The notes under the pieces were generated by a model that saw only the letters and a list, made by a program, of their open reading frames with translations, had not been told where the DNA came from and made no database searches. Source: Mytilus edulis (taxonomy: Eukaryota). Taken from it: a stretch of 64,000 nt of DNA. The position numbers were made by a program, and so were the translations under genes. The DNA lies in contig NC_092352.1 of the NCBI RefSeq assembly GCF_963676685.1, positions 14,384,001 to 14,448,000 on the forward strand. The letters are read 5' to 3'. Positions 52,401-61,296 of this stretch are shown here, one piece after another. How positions within the stretch are numbered: the first letter of the stretch is position 1; each line of letters opens with the position of its first letter.

Positions 52401-55400
52401 TTTTTTACCAAAATACAGGTTGAGATTGACAATTTCAGTAGGTTCACCATAAACAATATGGAGATTTACACCTCTGGACTGAGCATAACTTACTGAAGAA
52501 CATGTTAAGAATACCAAAAAAAATGATTGGTCTTAATGATAAAAGATCCATAATGTTAGCAGAAGTTCAAATATATTTCTTTGTTTACAGGCCATTTGGT
52601 CTTAATGATAAAAGATCCATAATGTTAGCAGAAGTTCAAATATATTTCTTTGTTTACAGGCCATTTGGTCTTAATGATAAAAGATCCATAATGTTAGCAG
52701 AAGTTCAAATATATTTCTTTGTTTACAGGCCATTACCACACCAAGTATGGCAGTCAGTCATGTAATGTTAGAGGCTTATAAAAAGTATATTTTGGTAGCA
52801 CTTATAGTCCATGGAAAGGTAAGTTGAAGAGGAATACTATCCAGTAACAATTTTTTTTTCAAGCTGCCAGTTAGGAATGGAATATAGATTTTGCTTGTTA
52901 CTTAGTCAAAGACCAAGGTCAAAGTTACTAAAAATATACAAAAATTGTTCAGAAAAGCAGTTCAGGATGCTTAATCAAATACAACATATTGGATTGATCT
53001 TTAATTTAGACTTTTGGTCACATATATTGAAAGGAAGATCCTTTTTAATTTTGAAGTAAGTCACTTGGTCAAAGATCAAGGTCCCTGTTAATAAAAATGG
53101 AATTGTATAAGACAATATTACTGTCTTAAAACTTGAAAAAAGATCATAGATTGAATTAAACTTTGCCATCAGGTCCCTGTAAGCGTTTTCCTTTTATATG
53201 TATGGTGCTGGATATGTGAACTTGCTAACTGAAGGTTCTTTTATTATCTTTCAGGTACCAAATTTACCAAAATATACATCACCTGTTGTTGCTAGATACA
53301 TTAAGGTAAGTGTTATAAAGTGAAACTTTTTAAGTTCATCAAATACCGGTACATTGATAGATTTTTTTCATAGAAACTATAATTTACATATGACAAATCG
53401 GTTATATTACTACAAAAAATACCAGGAATTCACACCAAACAAAACCATGTAAATTGCCACAGGAAATAAATAGTGAAAATTGTTCAATGGATAGAAATAA
53501 ACTCAAAAGGAAAAATGTAGAGATTGACAGCCACTTGACTGTCTTTTTTAAAGACATACAGATATCCATGGCATGTGTTGGATAAGATTAGTTTTATAGG
53601 TCCTGGACATTCTACCTCTTATCATATACCTTATACAGTTATCAGTACATAACAGAAAGATGTGGAGTGAATTTAAAATAGCACTTCAACCAATTTAAAG
53701 AAAAACATTTTCAAGAAGATGTTCAAGGGTTGATTGATATAAAAAAAAGTTCAGAAAATTGTAAGCAAGAATTCCCATGCAGTAACTTTTGAATGCAATG
53801 AAATTTAATGCAGTTGATTTCCATCTTGTAGAGGTGTATTTCTTGAGGGGTATGATTTCAGATCAGAGTATATTTTTTGGAATGCAATGAAAGTTGGTTG
53901 ATACAGTTGGGTATACATTTACAATTAATTCTCCATAGGCCGTAATGGTAACGTTTTCCTCCGTTGCTCAGTCCATATCGTTTACTTGAACATGTATGAT
54001 GGCTCATATCGAAGCTGATACATTTATACATGTCTGGTTAAATTTTCGGGGTGGCAAGTGAGATTACTTTTTTCGCAAATTGATGGACCCCGGAAGATGG
54101 TGAAAAATGTCAGTCTCCTCATGAAATAATCCCAAAATTCTGATCATAAAATTCAATGAAAAAATTGTCCTTTCTAATAATTTATTTCAGGTCAAATCTA
54201 CATCTTTCTTTTCTCATCACACCAGCTCTATAAAACAGTTCTTATTGTTCATTTATGTCCATTTTTAAAATCACAGCATCCACAATTGTATGGCGGACTA
54301 ATATTTTTTTTAATTACGTCATCTGAGTTCCTCATCTCAAGGTCTATTAGGGATCCTGACCCATATTGAAATTCATACTTCTGATTTTTCCAAATATTTT
54401 TATGTGATCTTCATCCGTATAACATTCTGAATAAATCTGTGTATTTTTGTCCATTTCTGAAAAAAAATAAAGTTGTTTTAGCACTATAAGGTAATGACAC
54501 TTTCGTCGCTATATTCATTTATTTTGAATACAATGTGTTTGTATAATTAATTTCTTCCAGAATACCTTCACTAGTCAAAACAAGGACAAAACTTCTGATT
54601 ATAACCTTTAATTACAATACACAGACCCTGTTAAAGCATTCTATAAAATTTTCTTGTGCCTTAAAGTGCATTTTGACAGAGAAATTATGCAAAAATGAAG
54701 ATTTTATAAAAAAACCAACACCAAAATAATTATTCTTACTAGTGGAAATCTGGTATTTAAAACTGTGGAAAGCACTCTTAACTACTTGGAAAGTCATCTT
54801 TATCATATAATTAGAGTGCAATATAGTGCAAATTTTCAAAACTTGTCCTTTCACATAATTCTATTTGAGTAAAAAATGTTTTTAACATGTATTTCAGTGA
54901 AAACCTTTTATTAGTGAGAAATCCACATGAGGTTTTAAAGGAAACATTGTGACATCACATGTATTATGGCGTCATTAAATAACGACAGATCAAAATAGAG
55001 CTAAATATAGTTTGCAGTGTTACGTGAGAAACAGTTGCCGCAAGATTTAACTCGAAATATTGAGTCGAAACGATCTGTAACTAAGCCTTTTCATTTAATA
55101 CCAAGACCATAGCAACAGTTTTCATATTTGCATATTTTTAACATACCGACTGTAATTTCAATTGCATAAATACCATAAATAAACAATTTAGAGCTTGCCT
55201 AATACAGCAAAATGCTTACCAGTTATTCAGGACTTTTTAAAACCTCTAGTTTGCCATCTCAGGTTAAAAAGTAATGATATGTCTGGAACTGAAATAAGAC
55301 AAAAAAATTACTCAGGCTGTGTTATCATTTGATTTAACCCTTTCGGTGCCAAAGCGACATATATGTCGTTTGGGGGTTGACTGCCGAAGCGACAAATATG

Positions 55401-58400
55401 TCGTTTGGGGGTTGACTGCCGATGCGACATATATGTCGTTTAATTGGTTTTAATAAAACAATCATATTTTATTTCTTTTTATCTTTTATGCTTTTGATAT
55501 TCTTATATAATATATACATTGTTGTTTTGAATTCATTATGACGTAATACGTTAAGTATATATGACGTCATAAATGTCAAAAGATCGTCTGTACTGTTCCC
55601 GACATAGCTATGGAAGACAGTGACGGTGACATAACAGACATAGTAACTTCGGGCGACGAAGATTCTGACGATGCTGATGTTGAAATGCCAGACAATGCTG
55701 CAAGACAGCCTAACCCTTGGTTTTCTGTGGTAGACAAAGAAACGTTTGAGCTAGACGTTAATCGTGATTTCGAAGAACGGATTGGGCCGTGTGGATTTGA
55801 AGCCAATTTTTCACCGGTGGATTACTTTGATAAATTTTTGAAAACAGAAGATGATGACTTGATTGATCGCATTGTAGATGAAACAAATAGGTACATTATT
55901 GGTTTTATATGTTTCAAATTATAACGTTCTTAATTTTCTTTGAATGTATATTTATATGTTTCCGTAATATAATTGCGGTCTACAAATCAATTTTCAAAGT
56001 ATTCTAATAATTAAATAACGCTCCAAAAGATAGCAGAGACATTTTTTCACAACATTAATTTAAAAGTTCTTGCTACCCTCCCACCCCCCCCCCCCCCCCC
56101 CCTCATCCAACAAAAACACCAGTAATCCTGTATATCCAATAACATATAACTGGTTTTGTCAACAGGTATGCCAACCAGTGCCAAACTACAGAGAATCCAA
56201 CAAGACATGCCAGATCAAACGAATGGTCACCAGTTAGCTATGCTGAGATGAGAGCCTTTATTGGTCTTGTTCTCGCGATGGGTATCGTAAAGAAATCCTC
56301 CATTGAAAGCTATTGGGAAGCGTCTGGTATCTCTGAAACCCCAAATTTCAGGGATGTGATGTCCAGAAATAGATTTCAGGCAATACTGAGATATCTGCAT
56401 TGCAGCAACAATACAACAGCAGTTCCAAGAGGTCAGCCAGGATACGACCCCCTCCACAAGATAAATCCAGTTGTTGAATTCTTCAATGAAGTGTTCGAAC
56501 TTAATTATAGGTAAATGTCAACTCAAATATAGAAATATACACAAGCCATTACGCGGTCATGTTTCCATGTTAAAAATAAACATAATTTATTGCTGGAACT
56601 GAGACGAATTTTGTCCTAATCATATTTTCCACTGCATACTAACTGTCATTGATTTAACACTGGTACCTCTTGTTTCGGGAAAGATAAGAGTAAAAAAAAA
56701 TCAATGTAATCAAAATTGTACAATCTGGTTATGTCGTTCATTATAAAATTCTAAAATATACATATTATTTTTTAATGTATTTTTTTTTTAATTGAGACAA
56801 GACTTGTTGTAAATAGATTTTACGGATTTTCAGACTATCTCAAAACATAGTTGTGGATGAGAGAATAGTTGGTTTCAAAGGGCGTCATGTTTTGAAACAA
56901 TACATTTCAAACAAGAAGGCACACAGATGGGGAGCAAAGTTGTTCGTCTTAGCTGAATCCAGAACAGGTTATACCCATCAGATAAATGTGTACAAAGGGA
57001 AACGAAATACAGAACGCCATCCCAATGGACAAGGGTAAGTGAAAAAAAGGGGGTGGTAACTCTGGATTTTCAGGTTTAGCGAAAATGCCAAAATAATATC
57101 GGCGAGATAATTTTTATGAAAATACCTTATCGGAAAAGAACACGAAAAATATTACTTTAATTGACTCAAATTAACATGATTGTTTCTGTAAATCGATGGC
57201 GACTGTATTGCGAATGAATATGACAATCCATGAAAGTAGACCAAAATTTACGCACATCTCCAGGTTTATACAGGGTATAACTTAATGACGCTGTTAATTA
57301 AGAAATGCCTACTTCTTATAATCAAGTAAGGCCGAATATAAGACTCGCATATTTAACATTTTGACTTGATAAAAAGTTCTAATTCTTACCTATTTCTATC
57401 TAATCGTTTCATTTTGTTATTGTCGGTTTTCCTTTTATTTTTTTTCGTCATGATTATACATGCAATATTTGTGACTGGACAAACACTCAAGCAATCAATC
57501 AATTTTTTTTATAGATATAAATCGGTAATGGATTTAGTACGTCCTCATTTTGGCAAAAACCATCATGTAACTATGGATAATTGGTTTTCATCACCTAAAC
57601 TGATGAACGACCTAAGGAACCGGGGAACAAATGCAACAGGAACTGTAATAGCAAGACGGAAGGGCTTACCTGCAAGTTTTAAAACAGCTCGGCTTCCCAA
57701 AGGAAGTGTTGTTGTTAAATCACAGAGAGGTCTTTTGGCTATTTTGTACGTAGATCGGAGAAATGTGACTTTCCTGACAACAAGTGAAAATGCACGGTAA
57801 GTTTCTTGTTTTTCAACCCAGCTTTGTCCGATAGGCCAATCCCTATATAATTTGACAATACTTGACTTTTAAAATAAAAAGTTATTAAAATACAACGTTG
57901 TCAAAAAAATACTTACATCGTGGAATATATGAAATACTTTCTTACACAATGTCAAAATTAACTATACAACAAAGTACAAGCTTGAAGTAACAGTCATGGC
58001 TAATAAAATTATAATATCACCAAAGTAAACATACAATAAAACAAGTCTTACTTAATATACTTTTCAGAACTGTGCGAAAAGTTAATAGTAAAGGTAGAGT
58101 TGTGTCTGCTCCAAGTGTTGTCCACAAATACAACCAGACCATGGGCGGTGTCGATCTTGGGGATCAGCTTTTGCTTAAATTTGAGCCACAATTTAAAGGT
58201 GTGAAACTCTGGAGAAAAATTCTCTTCAACCTTCTTACTACAGCTACAGGTATGTCTCATCTTAAACATTTGCAAGCTTTTTTAGTTGTCAATTCAAAGC
58301 CTAACTAAAAGACTATGTGCTTATGTTCAGTTGCAAATATTTCATGCATTGCCTAGAACAAGGATAAGTTGATATAAGTACCACGTATGATTTTTTTCAC

Positions 58401-61296
58401 TCGTTCCCGTTATCATTTCTTATCTAATTACAAGTATATAGCTTACTGTTTGGTGTGAGCTAATGCTCCGTGTTGAAGGCCGTACTTTGACTTATAATTG
58501 TTAACTTTTTATACACTGACTTGGATGGAGAGTTGTCTCTTTGGCACTTATACCACATCTTCTTATTTATATATATGTATATAATAGATTTGCACGGACT
58601 TAAACAAATAAACTTGCACTTAATATTTTTTCAGTAAATGCATATATATGCTACAGAAACTGTTTTCTTGTCCAGAGGAAATTAGACCATGTGAAATTTC
58701 AAAACGCAGTAGTTCGTGGTTTGATCGGGGATTTTAGAGGAGGCAACAGAAGGAGGGGGAGAAGACCAGACAACATTCCTATTGCAAATGCAATAAGGAT
58801 GCATTTTCTTGATGTTATTCCTGATGGCAAGAGGCGAAAATGTGTTAAGTGTTCAGGTTATAACAAGTACAGGAAATCCCGTATATCAACATGGTGTTCT
58901 GTATGTGGCGTGGGTCTTTGTGTTGGTCGGTGTTTCAGAGAGTTTCATTCATATGGACAGGAAGAGTAAACAGTTGAATTTTGAAATATTATTCATGTAA
59001 AATACAGTGCAATAATAAAGGATCTTTTAAAAAGATTTCATGTTGTATTAAACAAATGAGTTAAAAAAAGTCAAGGATTTTTTTTTTCGCTGAAAATTCT
59101 TTTGTGTTCTCTAAAAGTTAAAAGAAAAACAAAAAAGATTTATGATTATTTCAAAGCGAAGAAATATTTTTAAAACATTTCTGTGTTTGTTGGTCCTCAT
59201 TTCATGAAATTCTGTCAACGAACGACTTCGTTTTGATCTTTTGAAAACACGAGTTTTTGTATAAACTTTTGACGTTTTCACAACGACGGCGGCGATATTT
59301 TATTTTTATTTGGCTGTAGAACGTCACTCGGTGAAATCTTTATGGTGACGTTTCTAACGTCGGGAATTTGAATTCGGCACCGAAAGGGTTAAACACATAA
59401 GTACTATTGAGAGAGAAAAATCTAATTCTTGAAAGTTTAATCACAAAGAAAGACAAATGCTTCTCCCTTGTGGCTTAGTCACCTTCATTTAAACCTTTTA
59501 TTTTAGAAGCAATGGGTAGTAGCTAACTAGCTTAATAGTTGAATAGGTGCAGAAATATGGTTTTCAAAAAGGTTTGACCCTCCCCCTTTTTCACTGAGAA
59601 ATGACAATATCTATTGTTTTGCTCAAGCGCATTAAAAATATTAGTTCTTGATTTTCTTAAAACATGTACATGTTTTTTCTGTTTTTTTTGCATATGATAT
59701 CTACTGACCAGGGGTCAAATCATTGGATAAAAGCACATGCGATGATGTATCTCACTTTACTCGTATGAAGTGTGTTATCTCCCTTGATTATCAGGTATTC
59801 CTGTAGACCGAAGTGATAATTACATAACAAAGACTATATTGTGTCATGTTTACTTACAATTTAATAATATTTAAAAGTTGTTTCTTGCCTTTTTCAATAT
59901 AGTAAACAAATTCCTTTCGGATCTCTCGGAAGTAAACAAAGTGATGATTGTGCCTAAAAAAAGTGTTCAGCCCCGTGCCAGTAATGCATTTTAAAAGCAA
60001 AGTTTCATTGAGTTTTTGCTGATCTTTATCAATAATATTTATCTTAAACCATTTATAATAACTAGGTATAAATAAAAAACTACTAACCATCATTTTCGGT
60101 GGTGTACAAGGTGAAATCATCCATAAATCAGCCTGAAAACTTCCGGAATTAAGCTTCTAATTTGGGTATACATTTACAATTAATTCTCCATAGGCCGTAA
60201 TGGTAACGTTTTCCTCCGTTGCTCAGTCCATATCGTTTACTTGAACATGTATGATGGCTCATATCGAAGCTGATACATTTATACATGTCTGGTTAAATTT
60301 TCGGGGTGGCAAGTGAGATTACTTTTTTCGCAAATTGATGGACCCCGGAAGATGGTGAAAAATGTCAGTCTCCTCATGAAATAATCCCAAAATTCTGATC
60401 ATAAAATTCAATGAAAAAATTGTCCTTTCTAATAATTTATTTCAGGTCAAATCTACATCTTTCTTTTCTCATCACACCAGCTCTATAAAACAGTTCTTAT
60501 TGTTCATTTATGTCCATTTTTAAAATCACAGCATCCACAATTGTATGGCGGACTAATATTTTTTTTAATTACGTCATCTGAGTTCCTCATCTCAAGGTCT
60601 ATTAGGGATCCTGACCCAGTTGCTGTATTTCATGGACATTTTTTTCAACCATGAGCAATTTGAAGACAGCCTTTTGTTTGTTTGGCATTATAGCCCATGA
60701 GACAACTATCAATCATAGACCAACTGATTTATGGATGAAAGCAATTGTAGGTCAAAGTACACTTCAATAATGAGAAACATTAATATTGTATAGTAAGCTA
60801 TAAAAGCTCCTCCTCATGACAATTAACACTTCATTACATTTTTAGCAATTATTACATAATCAAATCTCTAAATTTAGATACAATTAAGACTAACGGTAAA
60901 TCATAAAGAGTATCACATAATATGTTATAATACCTTAGCATACTAGCTGTTGCAAAAAGACTTGTTTTTACCATCTATGTACTCTAATGATTTAGCCTTT
61001 AAACATTACCCTATTGTTCCTTCGCACTTAAGCAAACAAACAACCATCGTACTTATAAAGCATGAGACACCATCGCACTTAAGCATAGACCATCACACTT
61101 TTGAGTACCATTGCACTTTAGAGTCCTAAATATATGATTGGTATTTTATTTAAATTAAAAAGTGGGAATCTGAATTATTTTGTTTGTTTTACAGCCATTA
61201 TGCCAGCCATATCATGATCTTGCTGCATCTTATACAACCAATAATCCATCAGAGTTACGAAACACTGTGGGTAAACATCAGGAAACGTTTAATAGG
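40484..61296 (+). CDS. COPS3: COP9 signalosome subunit 3, first 10 coding exons (3' part beyond window)
   Basis: Exons 40484-40538, 44996-45125, 45625-45737, 48610-48659, 49364-49456, 50402-50476, 51861-51965, 52729-52818, 53255-53305 and 61195-61296 are all GT-AG and in phase. Translation: [19 protein letters not shown]...[17 protein letters not shown]...CNGEHVRYA...[15 protein letters not shown]...[13 protein letters not shown]...[23 protein letters not shown]...LPKYTS. Confidence 0.96.
40674..43462. mobile_element. Old TIR DNA element with GAG...CTC termini (Sola-like?)
   Basis: GAGTGGGTCCGGGGTAATTCCGTACA versus TGTACGAAATTACCCGGACCGACTC; internal repeats of GTAAT.CCGTACA. No TSD recognisable. 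Confidence 0.5.
40982..41822 (+). mobile_element. Helentron/HINE-like element with ~195-bp internal tandem cores
   Basis: 5' hairpin TTCGACTTTAGTCGAA, (GGC)n microsatellite, about 4 core repeats, 3' hairpin GGGTTCCG/TGGAACCC and T-run flanks. Confidence 0.75.
47483..48047. mobile_element. Kolobok-type MITE
   Basis: TIRs AGGAGTAGGTCCGGTAAG..TTTTGGCC / GGCCAAAA..CTTACTGAACCTACTCCT; TTAA flanks are degenerate. Confidence 0.65.
48711..49029 (-). mobile_element. 5'-truncated tRNA-derived SINE with 12-bp TSD
   Basis: Reverse complement of the 5149-5472 family; TGTATAGCCTTA is duplicated at 48699-48710 and 49030-49041. Confidence 0.8.
50515..50782. mobile_element. Foldback MITE (near-perfect palindrome, TA flanks)
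   Basis: GTAGGCAAAGGTAATATCTTTGGTTAGCTTGCTTGTTAGCTGAACCATGAAGTCA has an exact reverse complement at ~50708-50762. Confidence 0.85.
50862..51537 (+). mobile_element. Helentron/HINE-like element with (CGTC)n microsatellite and three ~170-bp cores
   Basis: Subterminal ATGCCCCAC / GTGGGGCAT, CGTC/CGTT microsatellite, three GTTAAAGTTTTTGGTCAAGGTAG cores and a 3' hairpin GTGT.C..GGACAC. Confidence 0.8.
52528..52735 (+). repeat. Perfect 69-bp triplication spanning the COPS3 exon-8 splice acceptor
   Basis: TTGGTCTTAATGATAAAAG...TTTCTTTGTTTACAG|GCCAT three times; the AGs end at 52590, 52659 and 52728. Confidence 0.95.
55338..59388 (+). mobile_element. Complete piggyBac transposon (4051 bp)
   Basis: TTAA|CCCTTTCGGTGCC ... 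GGCACCGAAAGGG|TTAA; 35-bp subterminal repeats with the palindrome CGACATATATGTCG at 55354-55440. Confidence 0.95.
55610..58969 (+). CDS. piggyBac DDD transposase, 541 aa, six exons
   Basis: Exons 55610-55890, 56166-56510, 56834-57034, 57515-57796, 58068-58249 and 58635-58969 splice GT-AG into one 1626-nt frame. Motifs [37 protein letters not shown] and the C-terminal Cys-rich domain CVKC...CSVC...[11 protein letters not shown]. Confidence 0.93.

Follow-up and report, generated by a model that had tools for sequence, protein, structure and literature searches.

The element and its insertion site

The 64,000-nucleotide stretch of the Mytilus edulis genome analysed here (RefSeq assembly GCF_963676685.1, contig NC_092352.1, positions 14,384,001 to 14,448,000 of the forward strand; hereafter the window, in whose coordinates positions are given unless another locus is named) carries a piggyBac element of 4051 bp at positions 55338-59388, the transposase gene of which is divided by five introns. 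We present evidence that this element very probably belongs to a lineage that remained mobile while it accumulated introns one after another. The parts of the element and the features associated with it are collected in Table 1.

Table 1. The piggyBac element of the window, its target site and associated features (TIR, terminal inverted repeat; TSD, target-site duplication)
Feature	Position	Strand	Remarks
Left TTAA TSD	55334..55337	.	Single TTAA here in empty paralogous sites
5' TIR CCCTTTCGGTGCC	55338..55350	+	13 bp, perfect
Three 35-bp subterminal direct repeats	55347..55451	+	14-bp palindromic core CGACATATATGTCG
TGACGTAA and TGACGTCA motifs	55539..55569	+	40-70 bp upstream of ATG; putative promoter elements
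Exon 1	55610..55890	+	ATG, acidic N-terminal region; one spliced contig begins at 55482
Intron 1	55891..56165	+	275 bp, phase 2; private to the window family, at an ancestral AG/GT site; RNA joint
Exon 2	56166..56510	+	PF13843 positions 25-120
Intron 2	56511..56833	+	323 bp, phase 2; common to three sister families; RNA joint
Exon 3	56834..57034	+	Catalytic D217 (codon 56856-56858); PF13843 positions 125-184
Intron 3	57035..57514	+	480 bp, phase 2; in P0153 and P0154 families, not P0156; contigs and 2 raw RNA reads
Exon 4	57515..57796	+	Catalytic D297 (codon 57576-57578); PF13843 positions 195-280
Intron 4	57797..58067	+	271 bp, phase 2; common to sister families; RNA joint
Exon 5	58068..58249	+	D399 (58153-58155), D402 (58162-58164); PF13843 positions 288-343
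Intron 5	58250..58634	+	385 bp, phase 1; RNA joint
High-copy dispersed repeat inside intron 5	58437..58572	.	~136 bp; present in all family copies
Exon 6	58635..58969	+	Putative C-terminal Cys-rich domain; stop codon
AATAAA polyadenylation signal	59014..59019	+	Spliced contigs stop at 59020-59035
3' TIR	59376..59388	-	Reverse complement of CCCTTTCGGTGCC
Right TTAA TSD	59389..59392	.	Sequence and empty-site comparison
Empty-site examples	C4:36619661-36620456, C3:53242573-53243368, C1:34884131-34884925		

The TIRs start with 5'-CCC and are identical in 10 of the 11 near-full copies of the family that are described below. Just inside the left end, the three subterminal direct repeats might constitute a region to which the transposase binds; motifs of the CGACATATATGTCG type also occur at the ends of sister families in the same genome. 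The promoter would be expected in the same left subterminal region, with the TGACGTAA and TGACGTCA motifs as its candidate elements, and motifs similar to TGACGTCA are found 5' of the ATG at a sister-family locus (L044).

To either side of the element, the 400-bp flanks are part of a repeat for which the genome yields more than 700 candidate matches and the units of which often lie in tandem, in arrays whose periods are ~1.75, 2.2, 2.57 and 2.77 kb. In many other units of this repeat the matches to the left and right flanks overlap by exactly 4 bp, namely the TTAA, and the units that we fetched read GATTTAA/ATACATAAG across the junction, with 394-395 of 400 positions identical. The existence of such empty units with a single TTAA therefore identifies the element as an insertion that duplicated a TTAA.

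Within the window, the host repeat amounts to 1.2 units, in that positions 53907-54363 are identical to positions 60162-60618, with a spacing of 2204 bp when the element is left out of the count. An initial annotation of this DNA, made from the letters alone, had taken these identical direct repeats as a sign of recent movement; they are units of a tandem repeat and do not date the insertion. We likewise rejected the possibility that the host is an element of the long-terminal-repeat type with direct repeats of its own, since it is a tandemly arrayed repeat of ~2.2 kb, other units of which have a single TTAA and no piggyBac. The host repeat (window 53907-55337 and 59389-60618) is very young, its flanks being 99-100% identical to dozens of units, and long arrays of it lie on several chromosomes (G000 C5:86835461-86861338, C4:69242558-69269729 and C2:35341912-35362082). 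It might be either a macrosatellite or a mobile element that has become arrayed.

The transposase gene and its product

All five introns have GT..AG boundaries and pyrimidine-rich 3' ends, and their G+C content is 27-33%, as against 41% for the exons. When joined, the six exons amount to 1626 nt, that is, 541 codons plus a stop codon without any internal stop; the longest uninterrupted open reading frame (ORF) within the element is 144 amino acids. Intron 1 includes a poly-C tract (56069-56116) that varies in length among copies and at which contigs break. The repeat inside intron 5 gave 4137 first-look candidates in the genome, where it exists in thousands of copies at 87-92% identity, and it appears as spikes of very high depth in all of the sequencing runs that we mapped. 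Its presence in all copies of the family implies that it was inserted before the family spread. A search of Rfam with positions 55000-59700 gave no match at E values up to 0.1.

For whole-protein searches we used as a stand-in the public protein P0151, an unnamed 541-amino-acid gene model of Mytilus edulis that is 3 residues off the spliced product of the window, and the window protein itself was searched exon by exon. Exons 2-5 match the piggyBac transposase domain of Pfam (PF13843, DDE_Tnp_1_7) colinearly, with exon-wise E values of 6.5e-25 to 8e-07, and P0151 matches the whole profile (positions 1-349) with 301 bits. P0151 can also be aligned over residues 47-536 with the piggyBat transposase (9c0f; E 2.9e-42), and the alignment to the T. 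ni piggyBac transposase (6x67) has an E value of 1e-25. In the exon-wise alignment to 6x67, residues D217, D297 and D399 stand opposite D268, D346 and D447 of the T. ni protein, and D402 stands opposite D450. The Cys/His pattern in exon 6 is complete (C500, C503, C518, C521, C526, C530 and H535), and the Cys-rich region aligns, by way of P0151, with the C-terminal domain of piggyBat. The transposase may well be catalytically competent, and its Cys-rich domain presumably binds the palindromic subterminal repeats. The initial annotation had called the TTAA duplication with perfect TIRs, the six exons that splice to an uninterrupted 541-amino-acid protein, the DDD triad, a Cys-rich domain and a repeat inside intron 5; these calls stand, the Cys-rich domain as a probable one, and the sizes and phases that it gave for the introns (phase 1 for one of them and phase 2 for the other four) are exact.

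Copies of the element and evidence of mobility

Searches of the window's own Mytilus assembly (1.37 Gb) yielded about a dozen copies that are 96-99% identical to the query and colinear with it across all introns. A probe for the 3' end found exactly 13 places in the genome, with every candidate scored, and a probe for the 5' end recovered these places again and two fragments in addition. Eleven near-full copies, among them the window copy, were aligned. They occupy ten different sites, two copies (C7a and C7b) being counted as one site because their identical flanks mark them as a single segmental duplication. TTAA is present on both sides of nine of the 11 (the window copy and eight of the ten others), one copy being flanked by CTAA and TTAA and one by ATAT on both sides. 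Near-identical copies at other sites, for which the initial annotation had proposed a search, thus exist, mostly with TTAA flanks, and the element is not single-copy. The ATAT-flanked copy (L004, at G000 C4:27932710-27936795) is otherwise typical; its flanks could reflect off-target integration or a later mutation in an AT-repeat context.

These copies bear directly on the question of whether the locus might be a domesticated host gene of the PGBD5 kind, the TIR-like ends of which are coincidental. In favor of this, the gene has several introns, and the coding sequence is annotated as an ordinary gene model in both Mytilus edulis and M. coruscus. All 13 copies, however, end in the same TIRs, those examined have 4-bp target duplications (nearly all of them TTAA) at ten unrelated sites, empty sites exist, the copies decay individually and no TIR-less copy with at least 95% identity was found in the genome. 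In view of these observations we regard domestication as exceedingly improbable.

The dinucleotides GT and AG are kept at every intron in all of the 11 near-full copies except one that has suffered a deletion. The full spliced frame is kept in seven copies, one of them with an in-frame deletion of 3 bp, and is broken in the other four. Pairwise substitution divergence among the copies ranges from 0.4 to 2.9%, and the larger insertions and deletions are confined to introns or non-coding parts. The variants comprise 22 synonymous and 25 nonsynonymous changes; per site, the ratio is 0.32 (p = 1.3e-4, binomial test), where 1 would be expected under free decay. The coding sequence was therefore under purifying selection while the family diversified. 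The proportion of variable sites is 2.9% in exons and 4.0% in introns, a difference that is not significant (p = 0.09).

No intronless copy was detected in the assembly, either with a probe that reaches from exon 2 into exon 4 or with the 3'-end probe. The introns travel with the element and are present in every copy because transposition moves DNA. The 5'- and 3'-end probes likewise detected no short non-autonomous derivatives of the window family, of the kind known as MITEs (miniature inverted-repeat transposable elements); certain matches of 81-86% identity to bases 1-104 of the element were considered as such derivatives and rejected, as they are the ends of sister families.

Transcripts and splicing

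Four public sequencing runs (X3, X7, X21 and X1) were mapped to the element, X21 being a certified RNA-Seq run. Contigs from X3 contain all five joints at the exact predicted GT..AG boundaries (skips of 275, 323, 480, 271 and 385), contigs from X7 contain four exact joints and two raw reads of X21 that have different starts span joint 3, so that the junctions predicted in the initial annotation are indeed used. One contig of X7, 1141 nt in length, extends from 55482 across exons 1-4 with three introns removed. Run X1, by comparison, contains the element with its introns in place, evenly covered, and has the appearance of DNA. There is no intronless copy in the assembly from which DNA reads could have given the spliced contigs of X3 and X7, and a retrocopy was rejected as their origin on the grounds that the probes recovered intron-bearing copies only.

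Unspliced contigs are also present in X3, with a depth over introns 2 and 3 that is about half that of the spliced contigs and with introns 1 and 4 left essentially uncovered, which is unlike the picture expected from uniform contamination with DNA. Retention of intron 2 or 3 would bring in a stop codon directly after the exon (AGG TAA, GGG TAA). One might imagine from this that splicing is a regulator, in the manner of the P element, such that partial intron retention in some tissues gives a truncated, catalytically dead N-terminal repressor. We think this rather improbable, since the intron contigs of X3 could as well represent variant copies or pre-mRNA, and in any gene a retained intron will as a rule bring in a stop at once.

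Other contigs differ from the assembled copies. In both X3 and X7, which are labelled as different organisms, there are contigs that match the element from 55628 on and have 255 nt of unrelated sequence before that point, and other contigs from these two runs depart from the element at 57272, within intron 3. Both kinds may represent variant or chimeric copies that are absent from the assembly.

Sister families and the probable gain of introns

The genome that harbors the window family also contains many single-ORF piggyBacs, with open frames of 579-617 amino acids that are 30-37% identical to the query proteins, and three closer families, which we designate by the public proteins P0153 and P0154 (49-50% identical to the window transposase) and P0156 (43%). 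The intron maps of these sister families were drawn from exon-by-exon matches and from direct reading of fetched loci. In the P0154 family, introns 2, 3 and 4 all have counterparts that agree exactly in position and phase, and an exon-skipped gene model, P0012, implies that intron 5 is present there as well. In the P0153 family each of the positions 2-5 is occupied by an intron; the P0156 family possesses introns 2, 4 and 5 and is uninterrupted at position 3. Intron 1 is absent from all three. The intron-rich mobile lineage that the initial annotation had proposed is thereby substantiated, in that three sister families have intron positions and phases in common with the window family.

A maximum-likelihood tree places P0156 as sister to the other three families (support 99/96) and all four within a clade of mollusc proteins that includes those of Haliotis and Tegillarca (96/94). 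When the intron maps are read against this tree, the simplest history indicates that three introns would be ancestral, that a fourth would have been acquired before the three closer families split and that the fifth would have arisen in the window family alone. The position of this last intron, intron 1, is a classical AG/GT proto-splice site, the state of which before the gain is kept in the sisters: at loci of the P0154 family an uninterrupted GAAACAAATAG/GTATGC is found, identical to what results when exons 1 and 2 of the window element are joined. The 275 bp of intron 1 match only the window family's own copies in the genome, and without any outside match the notion that the intron derives from an introner-like repeat found no support. 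The AGGTA at both ends of intron 1 was considered as a possible target duplication and set aside, being too near the splice consensus to count.

Readable copies of the P0154 and P0156 families start with TTAACCC ~270-290 bp 5' of the ATG, their termini begin TTAACCCTCTTA... and they have similar palindromic subterminal repeats; the TTAACCC starts and palindromic repeats mark these two families as TIR-type elements also. Beyond Mytilus, relatives occur in Haliotis (P0159), Tegillarca (P0162), Saccostrea (P0160) and Argopecten (P0009). The public gene models P0160 of oyster and P0009 of scallop have their breaks or skips at precisely positions 2 and 4, a coincidence that hints at a possible origin of these two introns before the genus Mytilus.

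A further family, 51-56% identical to P0153, was noticed at G000 C2:53258792-53259586, C5:71874963-71875604 and C6:12770273-12770818. Its members have a single open frame that continues across the site of intron 2, and all matches to it stop near residue 273, so that it may have a different intron map.

Interpretation

Considering its termini, copies, transcripts and relatives together, we judge it very likely that the window element is a DNA transposon of the piggyBac superfamily in a Mytilus mussel, of autonomous type, which inserted by cut-and-paste at TTAA and whose transposase comes from an internal six-exon gene that gained introns stepwise while the lineage was mobile. Such an element would be excised and pasted at TTAA by its own transposase. 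Transcription would begin in the 5' subterminal region and the message would end just after the AATAAA, with the host spliceosome having to remove five GT..AG introns before any transposase could be made. The 541-amino-acid product would then combine a complete piggyBac catalytic domain with a Cys-rich domain, the latter presumably acting on the palindromic subterminal repeats.

Several observations weigh against this interpretation. The match of exon 6 to the zf-Tnp_2 profile is weak (E 0.001, with 20 bits against a Pfam cut-off of 24). Runs X3 and X7 are labelled as RNA only by guess, and in the certified run, X21, coverage is ~1-4x, with little difference between introns and exons, and reads occur at one junction only. 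At seven tested positions the spliced contigs carry the base of 9-10 of the 11 copies and not the private base of the window copy, and it follows that the family is expressed and spliced and that the window copy may not itself be a source of these transcripts. The window copy has private substitutions that include Y315N (57630-57632) and D348G (57729-57731), and position 315 is a conserved aromatic residue, Y or F, in all relatives examined. The end probes detected no short derivatives, which would have been an independent indication that transposase activity is abundant, and no identical copies occur at different sites, so that the family may no longer be transposing.

These points can be accommodated by supposing that the family is a genuine intron-bearing piggyBac that is now dead, all of its copies being inactive relics and its transcripts being spliced by chance and representing background or read-through RNA. 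The lack of identical copies at different sites, with a minimum divergence of 0.4%, the broken frames in four of the 11, the very low depth of RNA in X21 and the lack of MITE-like derivatives would all be in keeping with extinction. Against it, seven of the 11 copies keep a 541-codon frame over six exons with every splice site intact, synonymous change is in significant excess and spliced, apparently polyadenylated contigs are present in two runs from two differently labelled organisms. Extinction of the family is accordingly a possibility that we take seriously and still find doubtful. The preferred interpretation, that of a mobile piggyBac with a six-exon gene, retains our support, and the window family has moved recently on an evolutionary scale.

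It is a separate matter whether this piggyBac clade of bivalves gained its introns (from three to four to five) while mobile because introns are of benefit to the element. The conceivable benefits include escape from a surveillance that acts on intronless invading DNA, for which the HUSH system of mammals provides an example (PMC8770142), and the confinement of transposase to certain tissues through regulated intron retention. We consider such an advantage unlikely. If it were real, no active piggyBac with several introns would precede this family, which would also offer a natural system in which to study how a selfish element gains introns.

Implications for annotation and for the study of introns

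A piggyBac can evidently stay mobile with a six-exon gene, and both ORF-length screens and surveys of the superfamily undercount such lineages. A curated transposon library for bivalves, for example, required ORFs of more than 300 amino acids (PMC10294476), and screens of this type would miss the window family, the longest exon ORF of which is 144 amino acids. The claim of the initial annotation that the element had been missed by ORF-based annotation of transposable elements holds in this respect and has to be qualified in another: the protein is already public as P0151, where it went unrecognised as part of a mobile element. Genome annotators file such elements as ordinary "PGBD4-like" host genes.

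The four families together document, in a single genome and with unusual clarity, how a selfish element gained introns. Proteins that are only 43-50% identical have intron positions and phases in common, and one private intron has its "before" state preserved. With five donor and five acceptor sites, the element is also well equipped to cause exonisation on insertion into the introns of host genes. Two gene models of Mytilus edulis, P0001 and P0004, fuse exon 2 of the element to unrelated coding sequence, which in P0001 is a C-terminus with ankyrin repeats and in P0004 a long N-terminal part; these fusions may represent exonisation of the intron-bearing transposon in host genes, or mis-annotation. 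Should the spliced cDNA prove active, a divergent piggyBac, as distant from the piggyBat and T. ni enzymes as the E values above imply, would be added to the genome-engineering toolbox.

Comparison with known systems

The window element resembles canonical piggyBacs (T. ni piggyBac, piggyBat and Uribo2) in its TTAA duplication, its short TIRs that start with CCC, its PF13843 domain with the DDD triad and, probably, its C-terminal Cys-rich domain; the canonical elements differ in that each has a single uninterrupted ORF in place of the six exons. Like PGBD5, PiggyMac and TPB2, the window element has a piggyBac-derived coding sequence that is split by several spliceosomal introns, and a survey of the superfamily by Bouallegue et al. 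in 2017 found introns only in the domesticated PGBD5, PGM and TPB2 (PMC5381638). These domesticated forms, however, are host genes present in single copy that have neither TIRs nor TSDs, and the canonical DDD is missing from PGBD5 (PMC5381638, PMC3902484), whereas the window element is multicopy, bounded by TIRs and TSDs and has kept its DDD.

The Tc1-like elements of pteriomorph bivalves known as TLEWI have 2-5 GT-AG introns in numbers that vary by lineage; their transcripts lack the introns, and the elements lack TIRs and are argued by the authors to be en route to domestication (bioRxiv 10.1101/656579). The window family shares with TLEWI the existence, within the same group of molluscs, of a DNA-transposon transposase with several introns that vary in number and are absent from transcripts. 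It differs in superfamily, TLEWI being Tc1/mariner, and in the possession of intact TIRs and TSDs. Autonomous DNA transposons that bear introns are ordinary in other superfamilies, as represented by the P element, Tol2 and Ac, and in the P element splicing confines activity to the germline. The window element is like these three in being of autonomous type, in having introns of its own and in depending on host splicing; it is unlike them in superfamily, and tissue-specific splicing is known for the P element, whereas splicing of the window family is known from joints only.

In literature searches on piggyBacs with introns, with Repbase lying outside them, we found no description of a multi-intron piggyBac that bears TIRs. 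The closest precedent is Pokey of Daphnia pulex and D. pulicaria, a mobile piggyBac with one GT-AG intron of 68-84 bp that has been verified by RT-PCR (PMC3849761, PMC3575242). Both elements are mobile, have TIRs, insert at TTAA and possess a transposase gene with a spliced GT-AG intron. Whereas Pokey has its one small intron, the window element has five of 271-480 bp and the sister families have three or four, and Pokey targets ribosomal DNA, which the window family apparently does not. The contention in the initial annotation that canonical piggyBacs are single-ORF and that multi-intron forms are typically domesticated was thus too absolute, Pokey being mobile with one intron. Because of the Pokey precedent, an intron-bearing mobile piggyBac is not new in principle, and it is the number of introns that is new. 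The window family does not represent a new mechanism; it is a multi-intron, recently mobile piggyBac in a small clade that has been accumulating introns.

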